From assembly GCA_002269645.1 (NCBI GenBank), contig NIVC01002739.1, positions 42,372 to 106,371 of the forward strand: DNA of 64,000 bases, read 5' to 3'. How positions within the stretch are numbered: position 1 is the stretch's first letter; each line of letters begins with the position of its first letter. A program made the position numbers and the translations under genes. Positions 3,545 to 62,909 of this stretch are shown here, one piece after another. This stretch comes from Macrostomum lignano. Lineage: Eukaryota. The notes below the pieces were generated by a model that saw nothing but the letters and a program-made list of their open reading frames with translations, was not told the origin of the DNA and ran no database searches.

Positions 3545-4620
3545 TTGTTCAACTGGGTGCTGTTGTCGCGGTTGTAGCCGGTGCTGGAGATCCGTACCTG
3601 TGTCCTGAGCAGAACGGCTTCCGGTCCCATCGCGGCACAGTGACGCAGATCCTGGCTCTTCGGCGAGTCATCGAGGAGGTGCGGACACGCCAATCGATCC
3701 TGATTGTCATCTTCATAGATTTCAAGAAGGCATTCAACTCGGTCGTCAGGTCGGTGCTTTCAAAAGTGCTCCGTGCATACAACGTACCAGAGCAGCTGAT
3801 TTCCGCCATCATGGCGATGCGCCGTGATCCGAAAGCTGCTGTTGCAACACCGGACGGCCTATCGGACTTCTTTGAGACATCCTCCGGGGTGCTTCAGGGA
3901 GATACGCTTACGCTTGCTTGCGTTCGTTCTGGTGCTTGACTGGGTGCTCCGGATCGCTCTTCCTACCAACGACGACGGTTTTCTGTTGCGGCGACGCTTG
4001 GGTCCACGTCAACCGGAGAGACTGTTCAACGTACTTGGCTACGCCGACTATCTCGCCCTGCTGTCTTCAACTGTCGAAAGCGCCCAGCGACAACTGGGTA
4101 AGCTAGTTGCTGTTGCGGCGAGTGTCGGCCTGGTGGTCAACACGCAGAAAACCGTCGTGCTCTGCGTGCCGGATGACATCGAGGCTGCGATTTAGTGACG
4201 AGGCGCTGATGGACAGGCGACAGAGCTTCAGCTGTTCTGTGAGGGCTGCCTTTCGTTCTGTGAGGGCTGCCTTTCGTTCTGTGAGGGCAGTTCTGCAGTC
4301 CGAGGCCCTACCTGACCGCCAGGGGGCGGCGTTGTTCCAGGCAGTGATCGAGACCGTCCTGCTGTACAAAACCGAGATCTGGACGCTGGTGGAGTCGCTC
4401 GAGCAACAAGTTGACGCGGCGCACGCTGGCCTGCTGCGTGCCGCCTTCAAGATCGGCTACGAGCGAGTGACCAACGCAGCATTGTATCACCGCACCGGCC
4501 TGGCCCATCCAAGCGACCTGTTGCGCCGTCGGCGACTCCAGCTGGCAGGCCACATCATCCGCGCCGAGACGTACTGCCCACACCGGTGCAGGAGGTGCTA
4601 CTGCCAACGCTGCAAACACC
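3545..4620 (+). mobile_element. RTE-clade non-LTR retrotransposon reverse-transcriptase relic, 5'-truncated
   Basis: EQNGFR, IFIDFKKAFNSV, GVLQGDTL, YADY (YADD mutated), GLVVNTQKT motifs; frameshift ~3915, stop ~4195, internal deletion. Confidence 0.9.
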
Positions 4621-4838
4621 CTGAGCTGCTGAGTTAATTCAATTGGACCAATTCAACTGTCGGGTCTTTCTTTCAGCGTCCTCCAGAATCTCCAGGCAGC
4701 GTTATGACGGACAGTCCGACCCAAAGAACTGAAGTTGATGCGAGCGCATAATATTAAGCTATCAATTGACAAATTCTCGTAAAAAATAATCTCAATCATT
4801 TCAAGTACAGCTGACCTTGAAATGATTAGGCGCTGCAC

Positions 4839-6400
4839 CTAAATGTGGTCATAAAAAGATCTATTTAACACTTCGAAGATCCAGGACTTCGGCAGGGGAA
4901 TTATAGTTCCGATAGAAGTGCTTTTATAGTTCTCAGTATCCGCTGAAAAAAAGCCACCTAATTCCTTTCTAAAAGTAGTCCTCATTTTTGTGATTACGTT
5001 GTATATGCGCATACGATAAGCAAACTTCATCAAGGAACAGTTTGCGCTCCAAAAAAATGATGCGCTCACCGAGAAAGTCCTCCCAGATAGGAGAACAGAT
5101 TTCGCAGCGGGTAGGCGAATGACTCGGTGAAGAGGCTGGTTTCGACAGATTCGGGGCAGAGGTCCAGCGCCGCTTTCGCATAGTTTTGCAGAATTACCTT
5201 AGCCTGTAGCGCGTCTTGCGGCCACGAATTCGTGGTTGTGATGACCCTATACTTGATTGCTGCAACGGCGCTGGCAACTGTTTTCTGACCCCAACCCTGT
5301 GTCTTCTGGCGTGTCAGCACTCGATGGTAACACTGAAGCAGCTCCCTGGTGCCATTAAATGAGGCCCAATTTTCGAGAATGTAGTCTATTGGAGGATGAA
5401 TATAAAGGATGAATTCCTCCACGATTGTGTACTCAACCAGGCCGTACTTGTTAGTTCGGCCATACCAAATGTTCATTGACATTAGCAATATCTGAAAAGA
5501 ATTCGAATGAATTGCCACCCGTGCTATCGATGAGTTACAGAAAAGCAGATGAAGATTTATGTTGCATATTCTAGTACTGATGCGGCTTAGTTGTTCTGTT
5601 AGCCTATGGGCATGGCACACATCTGTGTCGTTAAATAAGTCGGTCGGTAATGGCAGACACCCGCAGGTGCGCTTGAACGATCTTGCTGTACTGTATGACT
5701 TGAATCAAACAATCCTGATTTGAGCCGAAGAATTGTTCCGGTTCTTAAAGTTACCGGGCCACGAGAAGTCCATCGTGCAGGTGACATCCGGCAGGTTGTC
5801 ACTGCATGGTGCGGATTCGCGGTTCACCAGCTTTGCTACGGTTTCAGTGGTCACCCTGGCTGAGGATGTGGCCGTGCGGAGCCAGGAAGCCGGAGGTGAT
5901 GTCTGGCCTGTAGCAGCTGTTTTGGTACCGAAGTGGAGCAGGAAAGTGCAAAGGTAGCGACTGGTTTTCCAGTGTTTGGTTGCCTAAATGCAGTTTCAAT
6001 TAGGGAGGTCTGAGCGGTTCATTGTTGACCATGGGATGCGAGAACGCCAGTACATGCACTACAGAACTTGCTGGACCGCGGTTGGACCTAGTGTCTGCGA
6101 ATGCGCAATTCCTCAAACCACGGCCCAACCGCCTCGTCACCTTTGTGGGTTTGTAATGGAAGGCGGCGAAATGTACCATGGGCGCCTTGGCCGGTATACA
6201 AGTTGACCCCGGCAGGCAGGACGGCGGTTCCAACAGACCCGAGGGTGAAGTCCCTGAAAAAGCGGCAAAGCAGTTCAAAGGGATGCTAGAAATTAAGCTT
6301 CCGAGGATTTTTTAGCGGCAAAACCCCCCAGTGTATATGGGACAACGGCTCAAAATCTTCCTTTAAAGGTCGTTTCCATAGCAAGGTCGTTTTTTGATTT
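4839..6400 (-). other. Degenerate long reading frame of unknown family
   Basis: ORF 5066-5620 extends upstream past one in-frame TGA (~5705) and joins ORF 4839-5069 by a frameshift near 5075; ordinary globular composition; no motif recognised. Confidence 0.35.
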
Positions 6401-26189: not shown

Positions 26190-27292
<1,103 letters not shown>

Positions 27293-27689
27293 GTGGCGAA
27301 TTTTGTTTAGAGAAAAAACTCTCGATGCGATTAATAGTAGCGATATCTGAGTATTTTTGGCATTTTTTTGTAACATTCTGTATGACACGATTTCATTTTT
27401 CTATTTCCTTTCGCTTGTTCCAACTACAAACGAACTCAGGACGAAATATATCGGTTTAGTTTGAACTTGCTCATCCACTGAGTACCCATTTTTCATATTG
27501 TACGCTAGTAACATTGAATTGGATAGTGGGCTTTCTTGTTTGTTTGTTTGTTTGGGTATTACAATTTCAAACCCATATAGCTTTTAAAACATTTTGTCTA
27601 CCAAATTTTGCAGTTCATTTTTATGATACGCGCTCGAACAAGCTCGGGATTAGAGCTGATTAGAGCAGCCGTCCCGTCTTATCGTATCT

Positions 27690-28967: not shown

Positions 28968-29039
28968 TCCCTGATGGTCTAGCGGTTAGGATCCCTGGTT
29001 TTCACCCAGGTGGCCCGGGTTCGACTCCCGGTCAGGGAA
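28968..29039 (+). tRNA. trnE-TTC: tRNA-Glu(TTC)
   Basis: 72-nt cloverleaf TCCCTGA..TCAGGGA, anticodon arm CCTGG-TTTTCAC-CCAGG, T arm GGTTCGACTCC. Confidence 0.97.
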
Positions 29040-30318: not shown

Positions 30319-39632
<9,314 letters not shown>

Positions 39633-40063
39633 CTGGAAAACAAAATTTCGAAGACTTATTAAAGATGACATTATGAAGAAACGCTGGTATCGAAGCAGAA
39701 GCAAAAATATGCAAGTATTAATGGAAACGTCCTAAATAGTCGTAAAATTGTTGTGGAATTCCAAAACTTAAGTTGCGCTGTTTGCTTAGATACTTAGTAT
39801 AACAAAATTATTAAGACTTCTTAGTTAAAGTTTCTTAAATTGCTTGTCAAATCTCTAGGTATATAAGTAGTTTTTAACTATAGTTATTTCTATTGTAATA
39901 TGGAAAAAATTTCTACAAATATTGAGTATTTGCTCTTTTTAACTTCCAAGATTTTTAGGCAATTTATCTGATAACGGGCTTCATGTTGCAGAAATAGTGA
40001 CATTCCTGAATATTAAATAAATATTAAATTTACACAGACGCTCAGATATTAATATATTTGTAG
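39633..40063. promoter_or_regulatory. Putative bidirectional promoter/outron region between Tectonic and NPHP1; X-box-like GTTTGCTTAGATAC at 39780-39793
   Basis: 431-bp AT-rich spacer between two outward-facing splice acceptors; imperfect RFX X-box match. Confidence 0.5.
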
Positions 40064-40103
40064 ATTCTCGACCTTGTTGGAGGACACCAGATAAAAGCAG
40101 AAC

Positions 40104-43100
40104 ATGGGAGATTACGACGATTTAAAGAAAAGAATTGATACTTTTATTAAAGAGGTAAAGACCGTAAAGTGCTCATTTTATACATCTAATTAGTATAAGT
40201 TACGTAGAAACACAAGCATTCAGTCGATTGTATTAATTAGAAGTGAAAAAGAATGCACGTCATTTAATTCAGTGACTATTCTTTTTTATGTCTTCATTTC
40301 TATAGACAATGTGTCGTAATTTTTTTACTTGCAGTGAATTTAAAGCTTAGCAGTTTTAATGTATGTTAATACGTTGTTATGTTCTGCATGCTGCATGCAT
40401 TTTATTTTAATTTATGTTCATTGAATGTTTTTTAAATGTATTAAATTTTTATGTATTACTTGAAATAAAAACATCTTATGTATGTTTGTACGCAGTTTTG
40501 CTGTTAAACTGTTGTAGTAGGAGAGGAGAAAAAGGCCAGAATATTTATTTAGAAGCACTTAGCTAAAGTATATGTCATAGTGTCAATATTGATCTTTTAG
40601 TGTCCATGCAACCTTTTAGGTCAAAGGATTTGCTTCAGGCATTGCTGGAACAAGTACAGAAATCGAAAGCAACCAAAACAAGTAAGCTTCCAGTCAATTA
40701 GCAATAGAACTCTACATTTTTCTTTTATAAACTTGTCCACAGTTTTTAATCTAACCTTGCGATTGCTTTTCAGATATGCTGAACTTCGCACTCAACAAAA
40801 AGCCTTCATCAAAGAAGTCACGGAATTCCAGGTATTAGAATGCTTTTTTGTTAATCTTAAGTTCGAATTTTCTCTCAATTTTATCTACAATATCCTGATT
40901 GAATTTCAGCCGGCTAAGAAAATTTTCTTTTTGGATAAGAAAAAATCAAACTTGGTGAAGTCTCTTCAAGAGGAGCTGGTAAGTCAGCCAATGCTGCCTT
41001 TCTATAAATTCATAGTTTTGTTTTAACTAATGCGATAATTTTTGTTTATTCAGACAAAATCCAGCAAACTGATGGAGAAGCACAGTATCCCTGTTCCACC
41101 GGAGCCAGAAGAGGCTGAAGCTGAAGACAAAGAAGCAGACAACGCCGCGGAAACAACAGCGGAACCGAATGCGGAAGCAGCGGCACCGGCTACTCCGGCT
41201 TCAGCGCCGAATCCGGAAAATTCAGGAGCGGCTGCAGCTGCCGCGGCAGAAGAAGAGGAAGAAGAATACGATGAGGACGAAGAGGAAGAGGAATATGAAG
41301 AAGAAGAAGAAGCAGAAGAAGATCCAGCAGATTCTGCAACAAAACTAAAAAAAGAAGAGGATTCGCAGCAGAAGACCTCAAGCGGCGATGAAACGGCGCC
41401 AAAACCGACGCCAAGACAGGCGGCACCGGCGCCGAGAAAAACAGACGAAGAGTATGATCAACCGGATCATGTGGCTGCAGAAGCAGAAGCTGGAGACAAC
41501 GAAGAAGAAGAAGAGGAGGAAGAAGAAGAGGAAGAAGAAGAGGAAGAAGACGATATGCGCTCGCTGGCATCGGACGAGCCGAATCTCTACGAAGTTCTGC
41601 ACGCCTACACTGGCCAGGAGTCCGACATGCTGACCATAGTGCCCGGCGAACAGCTACTGGTGCTGCGCGTTGGGTGAGTCCGGGGAGTTCCAAATATTAA
41701 AATCTGGTATTGTACTTAGAATCTGGATTGGGGGTGATGGACCACCTGACCACCTCTCACTCTACAAGAACCTGGCGCCTTCCACCTCTCAACCATGGAA
41801 GAACTTGGCGCCTTCCACTTCTCAACCATTGAAGAACTTCGCGCCTTCCACATCTCACCCTAGGTGTCTTCCACGTCAAGAAGAACTGGCCACCCAATTC
41901 CAATTTTTCAGAGATGACGGCTGGTGGTTAGCCAAGAACAGTCGAGGCCACGAAGGCTTAGTACCGTCCAATCTGCTCAAAGTGGTTGACGAGTCCGAGT
42001 CTGGAGAAGAAATTGATGGAGCTGGCGAATCCGAAGAGGACAGCGAATACGAGGATACAGAGAGGCCTGCTGGGACTGCTGATGCAGCTGCTGAGCAGCA
42101 AGAGGCAAGTTGATCAATGCTGCGTATTCCACATGCGAATTGATTTTGTTTCCTCTTTAAAAAATACAAATGGAAGAGGCCACTGTGATGTGATATCGGA
42201 GCTTTAAACTGAGATTAATGGGGTGCCCGCTTCAGCACACAGTGGCTCCCACCACTTCAGCACACAGTGGCTCCCACCACTTCAGCACAAAGTGGCGCCC
42301 ACCGCTTCAGCACACAGTGGCTCCCACCACTTCAGCACACAGTGGCGCGTCCCTACTTATCACATTCTTCCCACTTTATTCTTGGCAACTAATTCTGAAA
42401 TAAAATCAACCGAAAAAATGCAGCGAGATTCCTGGATGGAGGACAGTGACGACTCGCTATACTCTGACAGCTCAATGTCAGATGGCAGCACTCAGCCAGC
42501 AAACCAAATGCTGCCAATATTCGAGGTATTGCTCAATTTAGTAGGACTTTCTTCAAATCTACAGATTTGTAGACTCAAATCATTTCATTATTGATGCATT
42601 GCGGATCCAGTGCTGAATTATTGTTTTTGCTGATTGTGAGCTCGATTTTTTGATTAAATTTCTTTTAACGATCAATTCGATTTTGTTATCAAAGTAGCCA
42701 AATAACTGGCCAAATTAAATTAAGGTTTGAGACACGATGATCGACAATCACACCCGCGAAGGGCCAACCTCCAAAGGCGCACAGAGTGTACATGTCCTGA
42801 CGATTAGAAGGTCACGGCCGCTGTACACTCTGTGTGAGCGTGTGCGATTGCCCACGAGTCAGCGAAATCAGCGCGATAGAGAAACTTGAGACAGATCAGA
42901 CAATAAACTAGTTTATTTCAAAGCGCAGAAAATTTACTTTTGTCTATAATAATTAGAGTTGTCAATTCAATTTCATTCTTCCAGCGTTCGGTTAGCCAGA
43001 GCAGCCACCTGCTGTCGGGACTTCCATCGGGATTTCGGAACAGCACCCTGGCGAAATGGTTCTACGAAGGTGAGCAGCCACCTGGGTGCCCGTTTGACTT

Positions 43101-43192
43101 CCTGTGCTGCATGGTTGTGATGATTTTTATGTGCCTTTTTAAGGTGAATAGACAGACTGGTGCTTAAACAGACAGACACAAGACACAGACAG

Positions 43193-43255
<63 letters not shown>

Positions 43256-43316
43256 CTAAGACAGACAGACACTAAGACACTAAGACAGACAGACAGACAG
43301 ACTGACTGACAGACAC

Positions 43317-43347
<31 letters not shown>

Positions 43348-43362
43348 CACAGACAGACAGAC

Positions 43363-43407
<45 letters not shown>

Positions 43408-43410
43408 CTA

Positions 43411-43442
<32 letters not shown>

Positions 43443-43456
43443 TGACTGACAGACAC

Positions 43457-43551
<95 letters not shown>

Positions 43552-43610
43552 CACAGACAGACAGACAGATAGACAGACAGACAGACAGACAGACACTAAG
43601 ACAGACACTA

Positions 43611-43641
<31 letters not shown>

Positions 43642-43654
43642 TAGATAGATAGAA

Positions 43655-43710
<56 letters not shown>

Positions 43711-46700
43711 GTCAGACAGCCAGACTGCAGGCATACAGACAGACAGACACACCAAATTCATGAAATACCGATATTTACCGAAATTTCAGTCTCTGCTCAA
43801 ATGCATGAAATTTGCTTGAATCATTCAGTAAGTCTATCGTACCATACTCTTACTAAAATGCTGAAGTGTTTAGCGTCGCTACGCCGTGTAGCTGACATGG
43901 GATAATCTCAGCGCTTATAAAATGTTTATAAAATCGGCCCTGTTGTTGTCCATGGTTCCTGCTGTCCATGGCCGTCAAAAAGTTCTAAGAAACCTGTTCA
44001 TAGACCGTAAAGTGCTTTACGAGTACTAGTTTCAATCATTCGTTGATTCTAAATGACTCCGCACCAGGTTCCCACGGTCTGTCTGCTCACCTGACTCCGA
44101 AACTGTCGCGCAGTTGCCTTGGTTACAGAGATTTACTAACCAACCCAACAAGTCTTCAGGTATATTGTCGCGTTTCCCAATGTCTTTGAAGATACGCTCG
44201 TAATTTCGCATGGCTGCCATAATCCCGGATTCCTTTAGCGACGCGTTTGTCACTTTTGCACCTTAATGACTAACTTAGCGATATGTACATGATTGTAGCC
44301 GGTGGTAAATATGGGTTAACCTTAGTGCACAACTGTAGCTATATTTTTTTAAGAATTAGCTCGTAATCCATTAATTTGTTAATAATTGGTAATCGTACAA
44401 AATTATTAAATAATGCAACCTAAAAACATAACTTGTGTCTCTCTTTTATAAAAATTGTTTTCTTAGAAATTCACTAAATTCCCGGCCTGTAGAAAATTGT
44501 TTAATTGCTTAAAATTCTTTAATCTTAAAATCAAGCAATTTTTTAGACCTATAAGTTTCAATGGTCGTGTTTTGGCTTTTTGTAGCTAATTAACATTTAT
44601 TGTGCTTATTGACTATGCAGCATGTTGAGCTCAAATGCGCTAATTAACATAAAAACTATCTTTATTTATTTTCAATTGACCTTAACAAATTAAAAAATTG
44701 TTAGTTAAAAGACTTTAAAAAATAACATCCTTTAATTACATTCGAATTAACATTCGTTACTTTTAATTAAATGACTTTACAATAATAAATGAATTACAAT
44801 TGCAGGTGCAGGTCAATTCAGCTTAGCTGGCAGCTTGCAGCCAAAACTGGCTCCATCCTGTGCTGCAATGCAGGACGGATGGTGCGCTGCCGCTCAGGTA
44901 CTGACTGGCATTGGCAGCAGCGCGTCTCACACGGATATAATACATATTAGTCAACCTGTAGATTTGTTCCCGCGGTTTGGTTAGCAGTTGAAAACAGAGA
45001 GGTTAATTAACTAATCACTTAAAGTTTTTGTCTGGTGTTTTAAAAGTTAATAACAAAAAATATACCTAGTGCTTTAGCAAAATGGCAAAAAGCTAAAACA
45101 TTTAAACAAAACAGCAAAATTTTTACCGGAAACTTCAACTTTAACTAATAGCTAGTAAAATTTTATTAATATCTTTATCTTTTCATCAGTATATTATAGT
45201 GTTCGAATTTTCTGGAAATATTTTTGAAGGCTGAAATTTATTACGTCGTTAGAATGCATTTTAACTAGTATATTAGCTACATGTAAGTCTTCTAAACAGA
45301 AGTTTGTAATCGTCACTTAGGTTGCGAATATTATTGACTAATTAAAAAAATTTAGGATAACTCAAATTTAAACTCTAAACTTTAAACTTCAACTTTAATT
45401 CAGTGAACTCTTAATTAGCTACCTCTAAAATGTTTACTAATGAATTTCCTTGAAAGCACGTCAAAGTAATTTCTAGGCTTCCTCTAAAACAAAAATGGCT
45501 TAAACTTTCAAATTCCTTTTCAAGTAGTTGAGGTTAGATAGTTAGTTGAAACTAAATTGCATCCCTAGTTTTCCTTTGTCTTAGTGGGTGGCGGTTTTAC
45601 TCAAGTATTTTTAAGAATTTTAATTTTAAGTTCAGCTAACAATTCTTTTCCCCATGAAGTTAGCAAAACCTTATTTTGCATATGCGTAATTTAAATATAT
45701 TTCATTCATTGTATCATACAAGTAAATAAATTTGTGAAGCCAAAAACCTAACTAACTATTAATCGTTTTGCTGTTATACTACTACTCGTGAGTAGCAATT
45801 ATGTTAAAAAATATATTTTAACCTTTTTCTAATTTCAGCTAAAATTTCAATAACCAACTAACAAATTAATTGAGTGATTATGTGCAGATATATACAAAAT
45901 CATAAATATGCTAACAACAACGATGCCAGTGTTATTGGAAAAATCTGCTTGAATTTGTTTTATTTCACTCTCTATGACAAAATCTATTACGATATACAAA
46001 AATATAGCTAAGTTTTCCAAATAAAAAAATAGTTATTTTTAATAAAAATTCATAAGAAGATGAAACTAAGAGAAAGACTTTACAGTTTACTTTATAATTT
46101 CCAACCTAAATTTAAATCCGTTTCCTAATTTATTCCAACTAAATAAAGACAGCCGCGCATTCACCGTTACTGTTTTACTCGTTAACTAATCAATGAAGTG
46201 CACTGCTAGTAGCCCAACTGCCGCCCACCCGTAGGTGCGTCCAGTTCCGTCGCGTATTGAAAAATTGTTGCACCTGCAAAAGTGCACCCTGATGCCAGCC
46301 GACCTGCGTGAGTTCGAATCTTATTTCTCAACTGGGTGAAGGATCAATGATTCGGTGTGGGATTGATAGAAACTGTTGGGGGGATTCAATATTTGCGTGT
46401 CAGAAGATTAGATCGAAAGAATAGCGTGAGAAGATGGGATCAAATATTCTAGCATGGGGAGATGGGATCAAAGATTCTAGCGTGAAGAGATGGGATCAAA
46501 TATTATAGCGTGAGGAGATGGGATCATAGATTCTAGCGTGAGGAGATGGGATCAAATATTATAGCGTGAGGAGATGGGATCAAATATTCTAGCGTGAGGA
46601 GATGGGATCAAATATTATAGCGTGAGGAGATGGGATCAAATATTATAGCGTGAAGAGATGGGATCAAATATTATAGCGTGAGGAGATGGGATCATAGATT

Positions 46701-49700
46701 CTAGCGTGAGGAGATGGGATCAAATATTATAGCGTGAGGAGATGGGATCAAATATTATAGCGTGAAGAGATGGGATCAAATATTATAGCGTGAAGAGATG
46801 GGATCAAATATTATAGCGTGAAGAGATGGGATCAAATATTATAGCGTGAGGAGATGGGATCATAGATTCTAGCGTGAGGAGATGGGATCAAATATTATAG
46901 GTGAGGAGATGGGATCAAATATTATAGCGTGAGGAGATGGGATCAAAAATTATGGCGTGAGGAGATGGGATCAAATATTATAGCGTGAAAGTGGGATCAA
47001 AGATAGCATGAGTATGGAGTCACTCTCAAGGCAAGGCAAGGTGAACGAAATGAAAATGAGACGAGGTACATCATGTACTTCGGTACGCACATCGCTGGCC
47101 ACATCTGCAGCCGTAACCGTGTTGGATCGTTTCGTTCGACTCTGCTTATTCGACGGCAAAGGCCCCGTGTCCAACGTGCTCACTATTCGAGCCGTGCCAG
47201 CCAGCAGAAACGACGACAGAGTCTGGAATTTTGCCAGCCGTCTGGGCGACTCAACTCCCGGATTGGAGTTTGGAGAGCTGTACCTCAGGTACAACTACGG
47301 TCCGAATCATGTCTGCCTCCTGCTTGAGGCCACCATCGTCTGCCCTGAGACCGCAACTTCGGGACAGCAGGTGCGCTGTCCTTGTTAGTTTGTTATTTTA
47401 GAAGGCCGGGGGGTTGTGTGCATTCCACCAATTCCCATGAGCAGGCACACAAGCGCAAGGATACGTACACGGTCATACGCACAGGTACATACTCACACAG
47501 GAGTGTACAGCGGGGTATGTACACTTCACTGTGCCTTCGGAGGGGATGGCTCTCAAGGGCGTTAACTAAACAAGCAGTGCCAAGCCGAGATTCCAATTCA
47601 GCCCCAAATTAATGTGACTGCACTTGGAATCGAGCCTGCAGGGCCGCTGACACACCAGATCGAGGTTCGCCCGACTGAGCCTCTCAATTCACTCTCTCAC
47701 TGAAATGGGACGAATAATCAATCAATTTTATTCACCATTCATTCCTTTTCAGCCAACTGGAAATGAGAAACTCGTCGAACTGAGCATTGGTCACGTGACA
47801 GTTCCTCTATTCGACGATAACGGCGCTCCTTTGCCGCCAAAGTAAGTGAATTAATATGATCCCTTTAAAATTTGAAGTTTTTCACTGTATTTTTCACTAG
47901 TGATTAAATAAATTTGATTTAGAATTAGATTGCACTGCTCTTATGCGGATATTGCAGGCAGAACTGCGCTCCTCCAATTGACAGTGCAGTGGCTCATTTC
48001 AGCAGGTACTGCAGTTTGTCGAAGGAAGACATCAATTGGGATTAAAATTTCACTTTAGGATGATGCATTTAGTGGGTTTCTTAAACAAGTCTAAGGATAA
48101 AAGTGCAAGCATTCGTTTATTTTGAAATAAACACACAGAAAGTAGTCCGTCGAACCTCCAATCCATATGAGCGTATAGTTCAAATGACGGCTTTTTAAAT
48201 GCTTGCATTTTTTTCATAACTTTGAAGAATTGTCTAAATTATCAAGTAAAATCGGTTTCAAGATTTTGTCTATTGCTTAAGCATCTTTCAATGTCGCTAT
48301 CTAGCTGCATGGTATTAAACAATTGGGTTGAAAAAGTAAACTCGTTCGAATTTAAACTCTAAAATTATAGCTAAATTTTTAGAACGCCACAAAACGCTTC
48401 TCTTGGTGAATGCATGCAAGTAGAATAATATTGATCATCATATTTGAAAATTTGCATCATTTTTTGGCTTCATTGACATGAGGAGTTTGTGAATAAATGT
48501 GTACTTTTAATCTATCGCCTGTCATTGACTTACTAATGACACGAAATGTCATGTACATGTACCTGCCTTGTATCGTTGACGCCTACAGTAGTTAAAACAA
48601 AATCAATAGTGGAGCCAAAGTGAACATGGCGAATAGCACTACTGAAAGTGTCAAAACATCAGTAGAATTTTTACAATACTTTTACTTCTATGAGTTTATT
48701 ATTTACTTTATACAGGTCGCTCGATTTACAATTGGAGGGCGGAACGCCGTTTGAACATCAGGTTGAAGTTGACTCAAATTTGAGCAAACCTGGAGGTAAT
48801 AATAGTACGATATTACGCTCGTACTATTGAAATATTTACCAATTAATATATTTTTGTATTAAAACAAGTAGCTTATTGTTGCTAGATTTACTTTTATTTA
48901 TAGCCGTTTTCTCTAGTTTACTTGTAATTTTTTTTGTTAAATGACGTGAAAATATAAATTCATCTACGTTTTGTTTAAGAGCAGTCAAGTATAATTACAC
49001 CATTTTAAACAAACACACGGCACTTTTCAGTTTCCAACAGGCGTCAATCCCTTTGGGACGCGCTGGAGTCCAGTTTTAGCGGTAGAACTTTGAAAAAAAC
49101 AAGAAAAAATCTACTTTTTTTGCTTAAAGCTGAAAAATGTGAAGTTTCTTTCAGATTTTCTATTGCAATTTTTCGCGCAATAATAATTACAAAAATATTT
49201 TAAATAATCATTGATTTATATTGAATCATTTTTATTAAAATTAGACTTATCTAAATTAACAAAATTAAAGCGTCAATTTTGCTCCGACTGCTGTAGTTTA
49301 AGTAGTATAAGATGCAAAATTAATTGTCCTTAATTAAATTTATTTTTCCTATTACTTTTACAGCGAACCAATCAACGGGTGGTTTGTTCAGAGGCTCGCA
49401 GCAGAACAAACAGCCAAGAATTCATTTGAAATTCACCATGCCAAATCGAGAAGTGAAGGAGTTCATGGAGTGAGTATCGAGCTCATTTTCGTATTTTTTA
49501 TTCTGGTTTACAGTCTATACCTAAATCTAAACTTACTTTAACTAATTTTGATAAGCGCAAGTCAATCATGGAGCATCATCTAAGATACCTTCTTGGTGCC
49601 TCATTACTAACTTTGGCGCAACATTTCACATGTTAGCGCCTCATCTCTTATCTTGGCACCTAATTTCTCATCTTGGCGCCTTATCTCTCATCTTGGCGCC

Positions 49701-52204
49701 TTATCTCTCATCTTCGAGCCTCATTTCTCATCTTGGCGCCTTATCTCTCATCTTGGCGCCTCATCTCTCATCTTCGAGCCTCATCTCTCATCTTGGCGTC
49801 CTATGTCTCATCTTGGCGTCTTATCTCTCATCTTGGCGTCTTATCTCTCATCTTGGCGCGTCTCATCTCTCATCTTGGCGTCTCATCTCTCATCTTGGCG
49901 TCTCATCTCTCATCTTGGCACCGATCATCTCTCATTTTGGCACCGATCATCTCTCATCTTGGCGCTTCATCTCTCATCTTGGCGTCTCATCTCTCATCTT
50001 GGCACCGATCATCCCTCATCTTGGCGTCTCATCTCTCATCTTGGCACCGATCATCTCTCATCTTGGCACCGATCATCTCTCATCTTGGCACCGATCATCT
50101 CTCATCTTGGCACCGATCATCTCTCATCTTGGCACCGATCATCTCTCATCTTGGCACCGATCATCTCTCATCTTGGCGTCTCATCTCTCATCTTGGCGTC
50201 TCATCTCTCATCTTGGCACCGATCATCTCTCATCTTGGCACCGATCATCTCTCATCTTGGCACCGATCATCTCTCATCTTGGCACCGATCATCTCTCATC
50301 TTGGCACCGATCATCTCTCATCTTGGCACCGATCATCTCTCATCTTGGCACCGATCATCTCTCATCTTGGCACCGATCATCTTTCATCTTGGCACCGATC
50401 ATCTCTCATCTTGGCACCGATCATCTCTCATCTTGGCACCGATCATCTCTCATCTTGGCGCTTCATCTCTCATCTTGGCACCGATCATCTTTCATCTTGG
50501 CACCGATCATCTCTCATCTTGGCACCGATCATCTTTCATCTTGGCACCGATCATCTTTCATCTTGGCACCGATCATCTTTCATCTTGGCGCTTCATCTCT
50601 CATCTTGGCACCTCATCTCTTATCTTGGCGCCTCATCTCTCATCTTGGCGCCTCATCTCTCATCTTGGCACCGATCATCTTTCATCTTGGCGCCTCATCT
50701 CTCATTTTTACTTAATTTCGCACCACGACGATTTCTGATTAATATTGGAACCTAATTTCTCATCAATGCGCTTCATCTCATACCACGGCGCCTCATAACA
50801 TCTGGTGCGTCATTATCATTGGGCGCCTTATATCTGTCATTGTGATTTACTATCGCAAAAAAATTGGCGCAATAAAACCCAATCGGCACTACTCGCAACA
50901 TACAATGCAGCACATGTCCAAGCACCATCATTGGCAGCATCGCTCACCTGCAGTTGCACAGCCTCTATAGACACCTGCTAGGCCAAGAGCTTAGCATGGA
51001 TAGTCGAATTGTTGAACGAGACAGTGCGCCAGTCTACGGACCATGTCTGGTTCAATTTCCCGCCATGGCTGACCAACCAGATCTGATGGATCTTATTCGG
51101 GTGAGATAACAACATCCTTGTCGTGAGCTGCTGGAGGGGTAGAAATTGAGTCATACTATATTATACTACGTACATAGTCGCAATCTGATTGGCTGCTGAG
51201 GAATAGAAAAACCTATAACGATACAGGGTCGGATTCTGATTGGCTGCTGAGGGATAGAAAAACCTATAACGATACAGGGTCGGATTCTGATTGGCTGCTA
51301 AGAGATAGAAAGTAATTACTGCTAAACTACGATCAAATGGTAAGGAACTTATTTTCACTTCATTTTAGCGTCGGTGGAACGAATTCGCAAAACGCGATCG
51401 AGCTTTTAGAGTAAGACAGTGAAGCTTAATTGAATGATTGGGTTTTTCTCTAAATTGTAAATATTTTGACTTGAATTTCAGAACTTAAACAAAAAAACAA
51501 ACTAATCTTTTTATCCAGAAACCAATAGCCACAGAGACAATGAAGCTGGAGTTTAGCCGCATTGTTAAGTCGACCTATTTTCTTAATCAGGTCAAGGATT
51601 TTCAGCCCTACGTGTTTGGCAACAAGGCGCAGGAGCAGGTAGGTTACTGACGTAATTTACCCGTCAGACACTCATCACACACCTGTTAGACATTCATCAC
51701 ACACCTGTTAAACCAGTCATGACACACCTGTCAGACAGTCATCACACACCTGTCAGACAGTCATCACACACCTGTCAGACAATCATCACACACCTGTTAG
51801 ACATTCATCACACACCTGTTAAACCAGTCATGACACACCTGTTAGACATTCATCACACACCTATTAAACCAGTCATGACACACCTGTTAGACATTCATCA
51901 CACACCTATTAAACCAGTCATGACACACCTGTTAGACATTAATCACACACCTGTTAAACCAGTCAGGAAACACCTGTTAGACAGAATCCCCAGTTTAATT
52001 AATCCCATCATAACAAAATCCCAAATCCCTCAGACCCGAGCAAATCTTATCCAGGATTTCCAACGCCGGACAGCCACGGATCCCAGTGGAACAGGTTTCA
52101 GCCTGTCCGCCGATTTTGCAGTCGAACCGTTTAGCATGCTCGAGGTTACTATGCCGTTGCTGGGGCCTCATTCAGTACCAGTTATCCCTGTTGCAGTCGA
52201 ATGA
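40104..52204 (+). CDS. NPHP1: Nephrocystin-1, ~820 aa, 18 exons
   Basis: Exons 40104-40154, 40620-40681, 40774-40831, 40910-40978, 41054-41673, 41912-42104, 42424-42525, 42985-43069, 44806-44897, 46235-46307, 47111-47370, 47753-47841, 48716-48795, 49364-49469, 50911-51100, 51369-51410, 51519-51638, 52034-52204; coiled coil, Glu-rich tract, SH3 ([17 protein letters not shown]), [40 protein letters not shown]. Confidence 0.95.
41760..41870. repeat. 33-bp repeat, 3 copies, in the intron splitting the SH3 domain
   Basis: AAGAACCTGGCGCCTTCCACCTCTCAACCATGG. Confidence 0.85.
42225..42345. repeat. 25-bp intronic repeat
   Basis: TTCAGCACACAGTGGCTCCCACCAC. Confidence 0.85.
42745..42850 (+). other. 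Long stem-loop element homologous to the core of the SINE at 47400-47690
   Basis: GCACAGAGTGTACA / TGTACACTCTGTGT stem plus outer CAATCACAC..GC / GCGTGTGCGATTG stem. Confidence 0.6.
43170..43755. repeat. (GACA)n microsatellite
   Basis: Direct inspection. Confidence 0.97.
46420..46990. repeat. 28-bp intronic minisatellite
   Basis: GAGATGGGATCAAATATTATAGCGTGAG. Confidence 0.93.
47400..47690 (-). mobile_element. tRNA-derived SINE in an NPHP1 intron
   Basis: Minus-strand A box GGCTCAGTCGG (47671-47681), B box GGCTCGATTCC (47626-47636), central hairpin domain. Confidence 0.65.
49630..50720. repeat. 22-bp intronic minisatellite, about 48 copies
   Basis: TCATCTCTCATCTTGGCACCGA with GGCGCC variants at the edges. 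Confidence 0.96.
51180..51310. repeat. 51-bp repeat, ~2.5 copies, containing CTGATTGGCT
   Basis: Direct inspection. Confidence 0.8.
51665..51980. repeat. 21/41-bp intronic minisatellite
   Basis: CATCACACACCTGTTAGACA-type units. Confidence 0.88.
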
Positions 52205-52992
52205 CAAGAAACTGTTTAGCGAACAGAGAAAAAGTAGGAAAAACTATTCTCTGTATACTATAAGTAGTAGACTGTCGATCAGTCGTACTAGTTTTTCAAA
52301 CTTTTATTCCTTCATATTTTTGTAACTCTCTTCACACCAAAATCATTTGTTGTGTTTTTTCTAAATTTGCATTCCCTATCGAAATTCTAGTGATGAAGTT
52401 TTTGCGATAATTTATAATTACTGTATCCAATTATGTACACATAGCAATATTATTCATATTTTAAAATGTAATCATAATCTAAGATTTATTTATGAGTTTA
52501 AAAAGTTGTCAAAAGTCAAGCAGCGGGTTTTGTTGAGAACGGATTAGGGACATTGTTTCTTAGAAAATATTTAATTGTTTTTTATACAAAACAGCCATTT
52601 TCTCAGACAGTAACTTTCCCGATTTTTGATTTTTGAATCTGTCTCTCGATTCTATTTTTTTCGGCTGGCAACAGATTGATGTGAATTAAAGTCTGCAACT
52701 GTAAAACACCTTCTATAAAAAAATTTTAATTCTTGATTTGTTACTTTTAAATATTTTAAAAGTAAAACAACGAACCTCTGCAATAGTTTTTATTTTTGTG
52801 GTTGTTAAAAAACTAAAAAATAAATAGCTCGTAAGTGTTACGCAGAGAAAATAAAAACTGAATGCGTATAGACATTTCTTTTTGAAATAGAATGTTTATT
52901 GAGTTAAGAAAAATAATAGCGCCAGTCGGTGGTACAGTACACTACAGAGAGTTAATTTTGGCGGGCTAGAACTATAAGTCATAAAAATATTC

Positions 52993-53679
52993 TCACTGAG
53001 CAATCTGCTCAATAACCCAGTCGGGGTTGGCGCAGAAGGTGAACCTATTGTCTACTGGCGTGCCCTCAACGAATCGAGCGTAGGTCAACCGCACGTTGCC
53101 GACCTCCTTGGAGTTCTCGTAGAACTCGAAGTGATTCGGCTCCACCTTGAAGAGCAGCATGGACTCTGGCGGCGGAATCTTGGAGTCCTTGTACTGGGCC
53201 AGCTTGTGCCTCAGCTCCTGGAATTTCTCCTTGAACTCTGAGTCGATCACCTTGCTCTGGTTGGAGTCGATAGCGCTGAAGTAGCACTTCAGGTCTGGCG
53301 TGAACATCTTCTGGAAGTAGCTGTTGATCACGTGACGGTCTCTGATCATGGAAGTCTCGCCGGCTACGGTCACGTGACGGCCGATTGGCAGCCAATCAAA
53401 GTACAGGCAGACATTTTTATTCTGCGATATCTGGCTGCCCTTGCGGCTGTGCAGGGTGGACAAGAACAGAAAGGAGTTGTCGCAGACGTCGGCGAGCTGC
53501 ATGGGCCGCTGCGATGGCGTCATGGACTGCGGGCAGGCCGTGGCGAGGACGAAGGTGTCGGCGTTGCCGAACTGCCCGCATCTGGCGGCGTCCTTCTGCC
53601 AGCGGCGGAACAGGCAGAACGGCTGCGAGAAGCCGCGGCTGATCGCGTCCTTCGGATCGCGGATGGGCTTTGTGTGCGG
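52993..53679 (-). CDS. PNPO: Divergent PNPO/PdxH-like protein, copy 2 (inverted); protein identical to copy 1
   Basis: 687-nt exon; 5 visible nucleotide differences from 26606-27292, all synonymous; alternative in-frame ATG at 54162 reading through the repeat. Confidence 0.8.
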   Translation of the reverse strand, partial: PHTKPIRDPKDAISRGFSQPFCLFRRWQKDAARCGQFGNADTFVLATACPQSMTPSQRPMQLADVCDNSFLFLSTLHSRKGSQISQNKNVCLYFDWLPIGRHVTVAGETSMIRDRHVINSYFQKMFTPDLKCYFSAIDSNQSKVIDSEFKEKFQELRHKLAQYKDSKIPPPESMLLFKVEPNHFEFYENSKEVGNVRLTYARFVEGTPVDNRFTFCANPDWVIEQIAQ

Positions 53680-54130
53680 CTGCGGAGGGTGAAGCGGGTG
53701 CGGAGGGTGAAGCGGGTGCGGAGGGTAAAGCGTGTGCGGAGGGTAAAGCGGCTGCGGAGGGTAAAGCGGGTGCAAATATTTGAAGCGGGTGAGAAGGGTA
53801 AGGCGGATGCGGAGGGTGAAGCGTGTGCGGAGGGTGAAGCGGGTGCGGAGGGTAAAGCGGGTGCGGAGGGTAAAGCGTGTGCGGAGGGTAAAGCGGGTGC
53901 GAAGGGTAAAGTGGGTGCGAAGATTTGAAGCGGGTGTGGAGGGTACACATAGATCGGGTGCAGTGGGTAGAGAAAATAACCTGTAAGGAGGGTAAAGCGG
54001 GTGTGGAGGGTATAATAGGAGAGGAGGGTGAAGCGGGTGGGGAGGGTAAAGTGGCGCAGAGGGTATAACAGGCTGAGGGTGAAGCAAGTGTCGAGTGTGG
54101 AGGGGGTAGGGAGGGTGTGGGGGGCCTGTG
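53680..54130. repeat. 18-bp minisatellite ahead of PNPO-like copy 2
   Basis: CGGAGGGTGAAGCGGGTG, reverse complement of the copy-1 unit. Confidence 0.9.
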
Positions 54131-60600: not shown

Positions 60601-62909
60601 AGCGAGAAGACTACCCGGGACAAGACGCCCGCAACAACACCTGCTGAGATGGCGCCCAGGGACAAGACACCTGCCAAGGTACCTGAGGAGAAGACCCCCG
60701 TCAAGACACCTAGTGAGAAGACACCCGGGACAAGACGCCCGCCAAGACACCTAGCGAGAAGACACCCCGGGACAAGACGCCCGCCAAGACACCTGTCGAA
60801 AAGACGCCCGCCAAGACACCTGGAGAGAAGACACCCCGAGACAAGACGCCCGCCAAGACACCTGGCGAGAAGACACCCCGAGACAAGACGCCCGCTAAGA
60901 CACCTGGCGAGAAGACACCCCGAGACAAGACGCCGCTAAGACACCTGGCGAGAAGACACCCCGAGACAAGACGCCCGCTAAGACACCTGGCGAGAAGACA
61001 CCCCAAGACAAGACGCCCGCTAAGACACCTGGCGAGAAGACACCCCGAGACAAGACGTCCACAAAGACACCTGAGCACAATAATACGCTCTCCAAGTCGC
61101 AGTCTGCCAGCGCTAGTGAAGCAGTGGCAAACACAGCCCACACCCTCGCCGTCCCTGAAAAGCCGGCCAATCGTCAGGGACGAAGCCAAAAGCGCAAAGC
61201 GGCCAGAGATGCAGAGAACTCGCCAGCCGATAAGCAGCATCAGCAACAACGAGTTGCTCCATCTTCAAACTCGTCGTCTCCTTTGAGACTGTGGAATCCG
61301 ACTAATGATCCCGTCGATGAAGTACCGCCTTCAACAAAGACTAAGACGAAGACCAGCAAGCAAAAAGCTAAAGTAGTTTCCGTCGCTAAGTCGGTTAAAT
61401 CGACAAAAACTCGCACGAACAGCAAGGCCATTGCTAAGGACGCTATTGATTCGGAATCTGAAGTTGTTGGCAAGGCCAATTCAACCGTCGTCAAGAAAAA
61501 TTCGCGTCAAAAACGACCCGTCGGCAAGAAACCGATTGTCGAAGAGCCGGCTCAACCAGCGGTTGGCAATTCGACGCGTCAAGCCGCTACGGTTGCTACA
61601 GACGCTATTTATAATTCTGCCGGTTCAAAGCATACCATTGCCATGGCAACCAACACGGCTCCAACTAAAAATAATTCGCGTCGTAAAGCGGTTGCTAAGC
61701 AACCGAGAGAGCCGGTTATTGCTGATGTCGAAGAGTCGATTGCTAAGGACGCAGTGGTTGCTAACGAAATCCAATCATCTGATACCGTCGCTACTAAAGC
61801 TAATACTAATAAGCGTCTTCGCAAGCCAATAAGCACTGAAGACAAAACTTCTTTGGCTGAGGTTGCTAAGGACGCTACAAGGTCCAGTCGAGCCATTCCA
61901 GCGGCGGAACTCGCTGCTCAGCCTGAAATCGTCGAGTCGGTCGTCGAAGACGCCCCGGTTGGTCGTCGAAAGCGACGGGCGGCAGCGCCATCTACGAAGA
62001 CGGCGGCGTCGAAAAAGTCCCGCCGCAGCGCCGCTAAGACCAACGAGATTGCTGTAGAATCAAGGGAGACGATTGTTACTAAGGAGGTCGTTGTCAAGGA
62101 GACGGTTACACGCGGCCGCGCCAAGCGAGCCATGGCTGTTGCAGACGATACCGAATCGCGGCTAAGAAGCCGCGTCGCGGCGCAGCCAAAAAAGCAGAGG
62201 AAGCTCCAATTGATGCGGAAGCTCCTGTTGCTAAGAGGGCTCCAGTTGCTAAAAAAGCGGCTGCTACTAAGGTACCTCCTACGATCGAGAAAGCTCCTGT
62301 TACTGAGGAACCTTCCGTTGCTAAGAGGGCTCATGCCACACGTAGGGCGGTTGCTAAGGAAGCTCCTGTTGCTGGGGAAGCTTCCGTTGCTAAGAGGGCT
62401 CCTGCTACAAGGAGGGCAGTGGCTGCTAAGGAAGCTGCTGTTGCTGTGGAAACTTCTATTGCTAAGAGAGCTCCGGCTACGCGAAGGGCGATGGTTGCTA
62501 AGGAAGCTTCTGTCACTAAGGTCAATACTGTTTCAAAGCAGTCTCCAGTTGCTAAAAATGTCACTACTGCCAAGAAAGCTGACGTTGCTAAGGAAGCTCC
62601 CGTCACTAAGAAAGCTGCTGTTGCTAAGGAAGCTCCCGTCACTAAGAAAGCTGTCGTTGCTAAGGAAGCCCCCGTCACTAAGAAAGCTGCCGTTGCTAAG
62701 GAAGCTCCCGTCACTAAGAAAGCTGCCGTTGCTAAGAAAGCCGCCGTCACAAGAAAGCCGCCGTCACTAAGAAAGCCGCCGTCGCTAAGGAAGCTCCCGT
62801 TGCTATGCCGGCTGTTCGGGCTAAACGAGCCGCTGCCAAAGTTGCAGAGGAGGCCATTATGGTTTCAGCTGAAGCTAGAGTGACGACCAAACGTGGCGAT
62901 CGAAAATAA
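57692..62909 (+). CDS. ~1,480-aa basic low-complexity protein with KTP repeats and H1-like AKKA/KEAPV repeats; six -1 frameshifts in exon 2
   Basis: Exon 1 57692-58708 (AAG|GTATGT), exon 2 59484-62909; one missing base each at ~60330, 60577, 60725, 60935, 62157 and 62750, and restoring each recovers the repeat consensus or the continuous frame. Confidence 0.65.
58930..59450. repeat. Degenerate intronic minisatellite
   Basis: GAGAATTCCCTCCTTGTTTATTACTCCTA-type units. Confidence 0.8.
59960..61070 (+). repeat. 27-bp coding repeat (KTPGEKTPA / KTPRDKTPA)
   Basis: AAGACACCTGGCGAGAAGACGCCCGCC. Confidence 0.92.

Follow-up and report, generated by a model that had tools for sequence, protein, structure and literature searches.

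The question raised by this locus is whether two ciliary genes that face away from each other across a short spacer are controlled from that spacer together, and by which site. The stretch analysed is 64,000 nucleotides of the Macrostomum lignano genome (assembly GCA_002269645.1, Mlig_3_7, contig NIVC01002739.1; hereafter the window). It carries a gene for Tectonic on the minus strand and a gene for NPHP1 on the plus strand. Tectonic belongs to the MKS module and NPHP1 to the NPHP module of the ciliary transition zone, two modules that are distinct and interact genetically. The original prediction for this locus held that both genes are driven by an RFX factor bound to an X-box-like 14-mer in the spacer.

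The minus-strand gene is Tectonic. Its coding sequence spans 30319..39671 on the minus strand, with the ATG at 39671 and the stop codon at 30319-30321 (GenBank PAA55539.1, BOX15_Mlig010888g2). In the hand-joined exon translations, Pfam recognised both domains of the Tectonic family, TCTN_DUF1619 (PF07773; E=2.3e-19, 70.8 bits, cut-off 22) and the cysteine-rich N-terminal domain DUF1619_N (PF25752; E=6.1e-11), and exon 2 encodes a CTCDL...NCCCDxDC motif. A word-indexed protein search, which is insensitive here, returned five proteins, and the homologues were named Tectonic-1 or DUF1619. The annotated Tectonic protein P0002 maps onto the window at 95-100% identity per exon, and the locus found from it (L002) is 100% identical to window positions 20319-49731 on the reverse strand. 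Exon 1 (39587..39671, minus strand), defined by translation, encodes MSSLISLRNFVFQATVILFFVAIKSIAQ plus one base and is followed by a GT donor at 39586-39585; its junction with exon 2, which starts at 39170, gives the QNNVGPCTC of P0002. GenBank labels the 622-amino-acid PAA55539.1 as 5'-partial from 39731, and the in-frame ATG at 39671 opens a signal-peptide-like sequence. By eye, the hydrophobic core and N-terminus of MSSLISLRNFVFQATVILFFVAIKSIAQ look like a signal peptide, and Tectonics start with an N-terminal signal peptide (PMC4635004). The Tectonic of an older paralogous locus (L001, described below) begins with MMVSSWIALFILSSVLCGVLSQSE.

The plus-strand gene is NPHP1, with a coding sequence at 40104..52204 and the stop codon at 52202-52204. 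Exon 1 (40104..40154, plus strand), also defined by translation, begins with the ATG at 40104-40106 and has its donor at 40155. It is followed on the plus strand by N-terminal helical exons and then by an acidic tract and the first half of an SH3 domain, which ends at 41668; the second half lies at about 41907-42000. This split domain was recognised by Pfam as SH3_1, SH3_9 and SH3_2, and its top PDB match among 109 SH3 matches was human nephrocystin-1 (1s1n, E=7e-8). Long runs of glutamate and aspartate lie on either side of it, in the open reading frames (ORFs) at 41039-41674 and 41640-42110, so that the SH3 domain stands between acidic tracts. The exons of the C-terminal nephrocystin homology domain follow on the same strand at about 42973-43074, 44070-44186, 47050-47343, 47762-47842, 48714-48812, 49360-49470, 50903-51106, 51369-51638 and 51971-52201. 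By tblastn, the NPHP1 exons are collinear over 42973-52168 with NPHP1 of Schmidtea, a snail, a nemertean, a chiton, an annelid and human. They share 53-83% identity with the paralogous M. lignano protein P0001, the NPHP1 protein of L001, which covers only the C-terminal nephrocystin homology domain.

An exhaustive HMMER search with P0001 returned 163 proteins, and the top named ones were nephrocystin-1 from ten animals of six phyla, down to E=5e-52. The matches named nephrocystin-1 came from molluscs, nemerteans, a priapulid, a hemichordate, echinoderms, vertebrates and Schmidtea. An NPHP1 profile recovered P0001 at E=4e-118; the matches of that profile search were mostly vertebrate and included no further flatworm, and the word-indexed protein search with the window NPHP1, again insensitive here, found the paralogue alone. 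Exon 1 fits the ExDxLKKxxD start of the NPHP1 alignment consensus, is 65% identical to exon 1 of the paralogous gene (L001 4939-4989), and matches residues 15-31 of Tubulanus NPHP1 weakly (E=0.6). The Pfam domains, the PDB match of the SH3 domain, the homologues and the collinear exons thus confirm the identities that had been proposed for both genes. The public annotation is corrected at several points. It calls Tectonic 5'-partial and has NPHP1 split or truncated at both paralogous loci: in the window only the N-terminal 453 amino acids are annotated (40104-44189) and the exons at 47050-52204 are unannotated, and at L001 (10001-16495) GenBank calls only the C-terminal 397 amino acids.

The two genes are arranged head-to-head as proposed, with the Tectonic ATG at 39671 on the minus strand and the NPHP1 ATG at 40104 on the plus strand. 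The spacer between them, a candidate bidirectional promoter, occupies 39672..40103; it measures 432 bp, essentially the 431 bp first given, and contains 29% G+C. The interval first reported for the pair, 39633-40104 (472 bp), does cover the spacer but also takes in 39 nucleotides of Tectonic exon 1. Head-to-head pairs are defined by divergent orientation with starts less than 1 kb apart (PMC4089025), and the ATGs of this pair lie 432 bp apart in the window and 345 bp apart at L001. No Rfam match was found in the spacer. At both paralogous loci, each of the two ATGs is preceded, at a distance of a few to about 40 nucleotides, by a pyrimidine tract that ends in AG; these tracts are at 39684-39712 (minus strand) and 40058-40064 (plus strand) in the window and at about 4628-4652 (minus strand) and 4894-4901 (plus strand) at L001. 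Their form suggests possible spliced-leader trans-splice acceptors; if trans-splicing does occur at these ATG-proximal sites, the transcription starts would not be visible in the mature mRNAs. Trans-splicing affects 38.8% of M. lignano genes (PMC5730564).

The pair is present more than once in M. lignano. Three near-identical copies with the same layout were found, namely the window (g2), L007 (g1) and L006 (g3), and the identity to the window is 99.7% for L007 and about 94% at aligned sites for L006, which fits the known redundancy of the DV1 assembly (PMC5730564). The old paralogous locus L001, on contig NIVC01000042.1, also carries Tectonic and NPHP1 head-to-head, 345 bp apart. Its Tectonic starts at 4593 on the minus strand, and exon 1 of its NPHP1 runs from 4939 to 4989 on the plus strand and encodes the N-terminus MVDFSDLKKRVETFVKE. 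Between the window and L001, protein identity is about 28-47% for the Tectonic exons and 59-69% for NPHP1, and the DNA comparison revealed no similarity outside coding sequence and repeats. The low protein identity and the loss of noncoding similarity indicate an ancient duplication of the whole pair, after which both copies retained the head-to-head layout.

The suspicion that this linkage is not general was well founded. The divergent or upstream neighbour of NPHP1 is Med6 in Priapulus, p31comet and CIA30 in Tubulanus, an unrelated 290-amino-acid gene in Liolophura, a bZIP gene in Owenia, FAM177 in Bulinus and CTC1 in Trichoplax. With four Tectonic proteins as queries, tblastn found nothing within 10 kb of NPHP1 in any of these six non-flatworm animals. 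Since the neighbours of NPHP1 differ among them and are unrelated to Tectonic, the linkage is derived in the flatworm or Macrostomum lineage, and it is persistent. A literature search found no earlier report of the linkage and, in the papers covered, no mention of Mlig010888 or Mlig013883.

The 14-mer proposed as the X-box, GTTTGCTTAGATAC, lies exactly where it had been placed, at 39780..39793 on the plus strand, and its minus strand reads GTATCT-aa-GCAAAC. It is 109-122 bp upstream of the Tectonic ATG, and X-boxes are typically found 50-200 bp upstream of the ATG (PMC1794439). Its identification as an X-box did not hold up, as it fails every published consensus. It shows four mismatches each to GTNRCC-N0-3-RGYAAC (PMC10530576) and RTNRCC-N1-3-RGYAAC (PMC2375033), and three and two mismatches to the degenerate forms GYTRYY-N1-3-RRHRAC and RYYNYY-N1-3-RRNRAC (PMC2375033), respectively. 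No exact match to any X-box consensus tried, even the loosest form RYYNYY-N1-3-RRNRAC, occurs in the spacers of the window and L001. For GTNRCC-N0-3-RGYAAC and RTNRCC-N1-3-RGYAAC, there is no site within two mismatches in the window spacer and none within one mismatch in the L001 spacer; for GTTRCY-N0-3-RGYAAC, the window spacer again holds no site within two mismatches. Compared with the nematode form GTHNYY-N2-RRNAAC, reportedly the C. elegans X-box form of Efimenko et al. 2005, the 14-mer has two mismatches on the plus strand and one on the minus strand. The whole window holds 98 sites within one mismatch of this form, or 1.5 per kb, and when spacers of equal base composition were simulated, 57% had one or more. 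Matches within one mismatch of the degenerate consensuses occurred at chance frequency, apart from those to the nematode form, where the excess was marginal (3 versus 0.8 expected; P=0.03, uncorrected across 15 tests). Because of these mismatches and chance frequencies, GTTTGCTTAGATAC as an X-box is indistinguishable from chance.

The strongest X-box-like strings of the whole window sit in coding sequence. GTAACC-aa-GGCAAC at 44113 is inside an NPHP1 exon. A cluster at 61.6-62.8 kb, which includes a perfect GTTGCT-a-AGCAAC, was rejected as valine-alanine-lysine codon repeats (GTT GCT AAG) in a long ORF, the repetitive lysine/alanine-rich ORF of 548 amino acids at 61124-62770 on the plus strand, where X-box-like motifs occur at 61637, 61691, 62299, 62440 and 62.2-62.8 kb. 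These codon repeats call for caution with X-box calls made from the motif only in the M. lignano genome. GTAGCCTGGAAAAC (39628-39641), an exact match to the pattern GTHNYYNNRRNAAC, was also rejected; it lies inside Tectonic coding exon 1 and is without a counterpart at L001, and the pattern occurs 8 times in the window versus 6.1 expected, which is chance level. At L001, a GCTACC-a-TGCAAC at 4609-4621 lies in the annotated 5' untranslated region (UTR) of the paralogous Tectonic gene; this further X-box-like site has two mismatches to GTTRCY-N-RGYAAC and no counterpart in the window.

A different signal emerged when the window and L001 spacers were compared by an ungapped local scan with shuffled controls; a global MAFFT alignment had misplaced it. 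The 29-bp block TTTGCTTAGATACTTAGTATAACAAAATT at 39781..39809 aligns with TTGGCTTAGTTACTAAGTAAAACAAAGTT at L001 4681-4709, with 24 of the 29 bases identical. Its score was 16.5, versus 10.3 +/- 1.2 for shuffles (maximum 15 in 300) and 9.5 for the reverse-complement control. It is the sole significant block shared by these old paralogous spacers, is unique in the window, and is invariant in g1-g3. The block starts 110 nucleotides (window) and 88 nucleotides (L001) upstream of the Tectonic ATG, and ends 295 and 230 nucleotides upstream of the NPHP1 ATG, respectively. It overlaps GTTTGCTTAGATAC over 13 of 14 bases. Three weaker blocks, individually non-significant, keep one and the same order in the two spacers. 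The runner-up among the shared blocks, TACAC(A/T)GACGCT (40031-40048), scored 10.5, inside the shuffle range, and was discarded.

The core of the 29-bp block is an imperfect 6-1-6 palindrome, GATACT-t-AGTATA at 39789..39801, which reads GTTACT-a-AGTAAA at L001. The A..T to T..A difference between the two versions does not disturb the symmetry. At L001 the palindrome comes within one mismatch of GTTRCY-N-RGYAAC, a likeness found in about 4% of simulated spacers (P about 0.04), and this X-box-like reading is in a register shifted by 9 nucleotides from GTTTGCTTAGATAC. The window version has three mismatches to the same form, including an A at the nearly invariant second position, and is not a recognisable X-box, so the X-box likeness is not stable between the two copies. 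With one copy so close to an X-box, RFX is a possible, unproven candidate for the site, perhaps an ancestral one. Two other readings, of the AACAAA tail, were tried by inspection and rejected: neither copy fits the forkhead motif RYMAAYA, and only the L001 copy fits the SOX motif WWCAAWG. The conserved 29-bp block is the best candidate for a shared control site of the pair.

Recent change in the spacer is unevenly distributed. Between g2 and g3, the Tectonic-proximal part (39672..39820, 149 bp) shows three substitutions and no insertions or deletions (2.0%), versus 21 substitutions in 274 aligned bases (7.5-7.9%), a 47-bp insertion and nine deleted bases in the remainder, and 50 substitutions in 835 bases (5-7%) in the flanking introns. 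By one-sided Fisher tests, the difference of the Tectonic-proximal part from the spacer remainder and from the introns gave P=0.011 and P=0.028, respectively. From this constraint among recent copies, a functional core appears to lie on the Tectonic side of the spacer. The constrained part also contains a near-perfect 18-bp palindrome, GTTGTGGAATTCCAAAAC (39750-39767), identical in all three recent copies but without an equivalent at L001.

On balance, the spacer is probably a compact shared bidirectional promoter for ciliated cells, in which the conserved element drives both genes. Its functional core appears to be the constrained stretch of about 150 bp that adjoins Tectonic. The candidate element, the 29-bp block with its palindrome G-W-TACT-N-AGTA-W-A followed by AACAAA, starts about 90-110 bp upstream of the Tectonic ATG and lies about 300 bp upstream of NPHP1. 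A dimeric transcription factor, possibly RFX, would bind the palindrome and activate both Tectonic and NPHP1 in ciliated cells. The layout kept at L001 and the partial constraint of the spacer both fit a shared promoter, and head-to-head pairs less than 1 kb apart tend toward co-expression and co-function (PMC4089025). The RFX dependence of tctn-1 in C. elegans (PMC4635004) and the precedent of TMEM138-TMEM216 (PMC3631122) agree with this reading as well. Gene identities, arrangement, persistence, absence of the linkage elsewhere and conservation are the observations from which we infer promoter sharing, co-expression and the nature of the factor. A more far-reaching version, distinctly unlikely as a whole, is that a bidirectional cis-regulatory module of the Macrostomum lineage couples the MKS and NPHP modules, that selection has kept the pair together through its duplication, and that its non-canonical palindrome is read by a relaxed or shifted RFX or by another ciliogenic factor.

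Several points weigh against a shared promoter. Sharing is read from geometry and conservation alone. The two thirds of the spacer nearest NPHP1 change at an intron-like pace and have accepted an insertion of 47 bp, so NPHP1 may use a separate promoter under weak constraint, and Tectonic may be the only gene that the conserved element serves. Because so short a spacer is not easily broken, survival of the layout after duplication is weak evidence for selection on the linkage. Statistical support for constraint is modest (P about 0.01-0.03), and two sequences make up the deep comparison. In the palindrome, the compensatory change happened once, and given two substitutions it would arise by chance about 1 time in 3.

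In a rival account, the adjacency has no regulatory meaning: a rearrangement in a repeat-rich, rearranging genome brought the genes together, each has its own promoter in its half of the spacer, and the 29-bp block is a proximal element of Tectonic only. The confinement of constraint to the Tectonic side, with intron-like rates and large insertions or deletions on the NPHP1 side, agrees with this account, as does the position of the block, 88-110 bp from the Tectonic ATG versus 230-295 bp from the NPHP1 ATG. A TATA-like TATATAAG at 39860-39867 points toward NPHP1 and has a weak counterpart, TATAAGTA, at L001, and about 10% of eukaryotic genes are head-to-head anyway (PMC4089025). However, we estimate the chance that the divergent partner is also a transition-zone gene at about 0.1% (a few dozen such genes among tens of thousands), the layout has outlived a duplication old enough for about 30-70% protein identity, and in divergent pairs an element at a distance of about 300 bp often controls both genes. 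We regard this account as somewhat doubtful, although it deserves weight. The original prediction, that GTTTGCTTAGATAC is a functional X-box whose bound RFX factor drives both genes, was right about the identities, the divergence, the short spacer and the restricted linkage, and was not supported in reading the 14-mer as an X-box; as a functional claim we consider it unlikely. It draws strength from C. elegans, where the orthologues of both genes are RFX/DAF-19 targets (PMC4635004 for tctn-1) and where tctn-1, predicted to be an X-box gene, shows reduced expression when daf-19 is mutated (PMC4635004). The distance of the 14-mer from the Tectonic ATG, inside -50 to -200 (PMC1794439), its overlap with the deeply conserved block, the single minus-strand mismatch to the nematode form and the L001 palindrome (P about 0.04) all speak for it as well. 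Set against these are the four mismatches to GTNRCC-N0-3-RGYAAC and three to GYTRYY-N1-3-RRHRAC, the lack in the window spacer of any site within two mismatches of GTTRCY-N0-3-RGYAAC or any exact RYYNYY-N1-3-RRNRAC, and the commonness of sites of this quality, at 1.5 per kb and in 57% of random spacers. Moreover, L001 in the same register reads GTAACT-aa-GCCAAG, with two mismatches; the better register puts an A at the nearly invariant second position in the window (GATACT); and the best X-box strings of the window fall in coding repeats, which shows that such matches arise easily.

The block could also be an RNA-processing or 5' UTR signal of the Tectonic transcript and not a transcription-factor site. 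It might, for example, mark where the 5' UTR begins, or be a spliced-leader branch point with its acceptor. Its minus strand reads TTTTGTTATACTAAG/TATCTAAG, pyrimidine-rich and then AG, and at L001 TTTGTTTTACTTAG/TAACTAAG; no upstream ATG occurs in the 140 nucleotides from the block to the Tectonic start codon, a stretch in which homeologues are highly conserved, and trans-splicing in this species is frequent, as given above (38.8% of genes; PMC5730564). Yet a stronger acceptor-like site, a long pyrimidine tract with CAG, lies 12 nucleotides upstream of the Tectonic ATG in the window and a similar one 34 nucleotides upstream at L001. The L001 Tectonic transcript has its annotated 5' end (4638) downstream of the block, the L001 stretch from block to start codon does have upstream ATGs, and splice signals rarely retain 24 of 29 bases over such divergence. 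This reading seems very improbable.

Adjacent transition-zone genes with a common control element have been described before. TMEM138 and TMEM216 share an RFX4-bound intergenic element, according to the summary of Lee et al. 2012 (Science) in PMC3631122. Like TMEM138-TMEM216 as outlined there, Tectonic-NPHP1 consists of two non-homologous transition-zone genes that were made neighbours in evolution, with an adjacency that is lineage-restricted and not ancestral, and in both cases co-regulation through a conserved noncoding intergenic element has been proposed. Unlike Tectonic-NPHP1, which joins one MKS-module gene and one NPHP-module gene, TMEM138 and TMEM216 both encode tetraspan proteins of the MKS module, and they are arranged head-to-tail in mammals whereas the present pair is head-to-head, 432 bp apart, in a flatworm. 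RFX4 binding at TMEM138-TMEM216 is experimental, whereas Tectonic-NPHP1 is known from its sequence and its element is not a consensus X-box. In the same account, the head-to-head pair EVC-EVC2 is cited, which resembles Tectonic-NPHP1 as a divergent pair of non-homologous genes with a short spacer that serve one ciliary complex or compartment. It differs in genes and lineage, and in that the EVC and EVC2 proteins form one complex, whereas Tectonic and NPHP1 belong to two modules.

The RFX/DAF-19 X-box promoters of C. elegans tctn-1 and other ciliary genes offer a further parallel (PMC4635004, PMC1794439, PMC2375033, PMC10530576), in that tctn-1 is orthologous and the palindromic element lies at a similar distance from the ATG, about 100 bp upstream. 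The L001 copy, at one mismatch from GTTRCY-N-RGYAAC, is like the ciliary X-box promoters of C. elegans, whereas the window strings GATACT-t-AGTATA and GTATCT-aa-GCAAAC fail all published consensus forms. In C. elegans the Tectonic and NPHP1 genes are, to our knowledge, unlinked, and each would have its own X-box.

As it stands, Tectonic-NPHP1 is plausibly a further, ordinary instance of a co-functional divergent gene pair. Should the spacer prove to be a shared promoter, the pair would be the second case, evolved independently of TMEM138-TMEM216, of transition-zone genes under one control element; if the module reading also holds, it would be an independent invertebrate parallel to TMEM138-TMEM216 and RFX4. 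Such a pair would join the MKS and NPHP modules and bear on the stoichiometric expression of ciliary-gate components. Transgenesis works in M. lignano (PMC5730564), and a 432-bp bidirectional promoter specific to ciliated cells would be of practical use there.

The surroundings of the pair are rich in repeats. The introns of both genes are full of long tandem-repeat arrays with units of about 35, 69, 8-16, 4-8, 56 and 20 bp (35366-36954, 37214-37845, 38160-38640, 43150-43760, 46381-47004 and 49555-50750), which account for the gene sizes of 9.4 kb (Tectonic) and 12.1 kb (NPHP1) and for many spurious long ORFs. A tRNA-Glu gene (anticodon TTC) lies at 28968-29039 on the plus strand, about 1.3 kb past the 3' end of Tectonic (Rfam, 61.4 bits; ARAGORN). 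An inverted duplicate of about 1.08 kb and 92.6% identity flanks Tectonic-NPHP1 with one copy on each side, at about 26230-27293 and 52992-54068. It carries a pyridoxamine-phosphate-oxidase-like gene (Pfam PNPOx_N in the annotated copy), and a PNPOx gene also follows Tectonic in copies g1 and g3.

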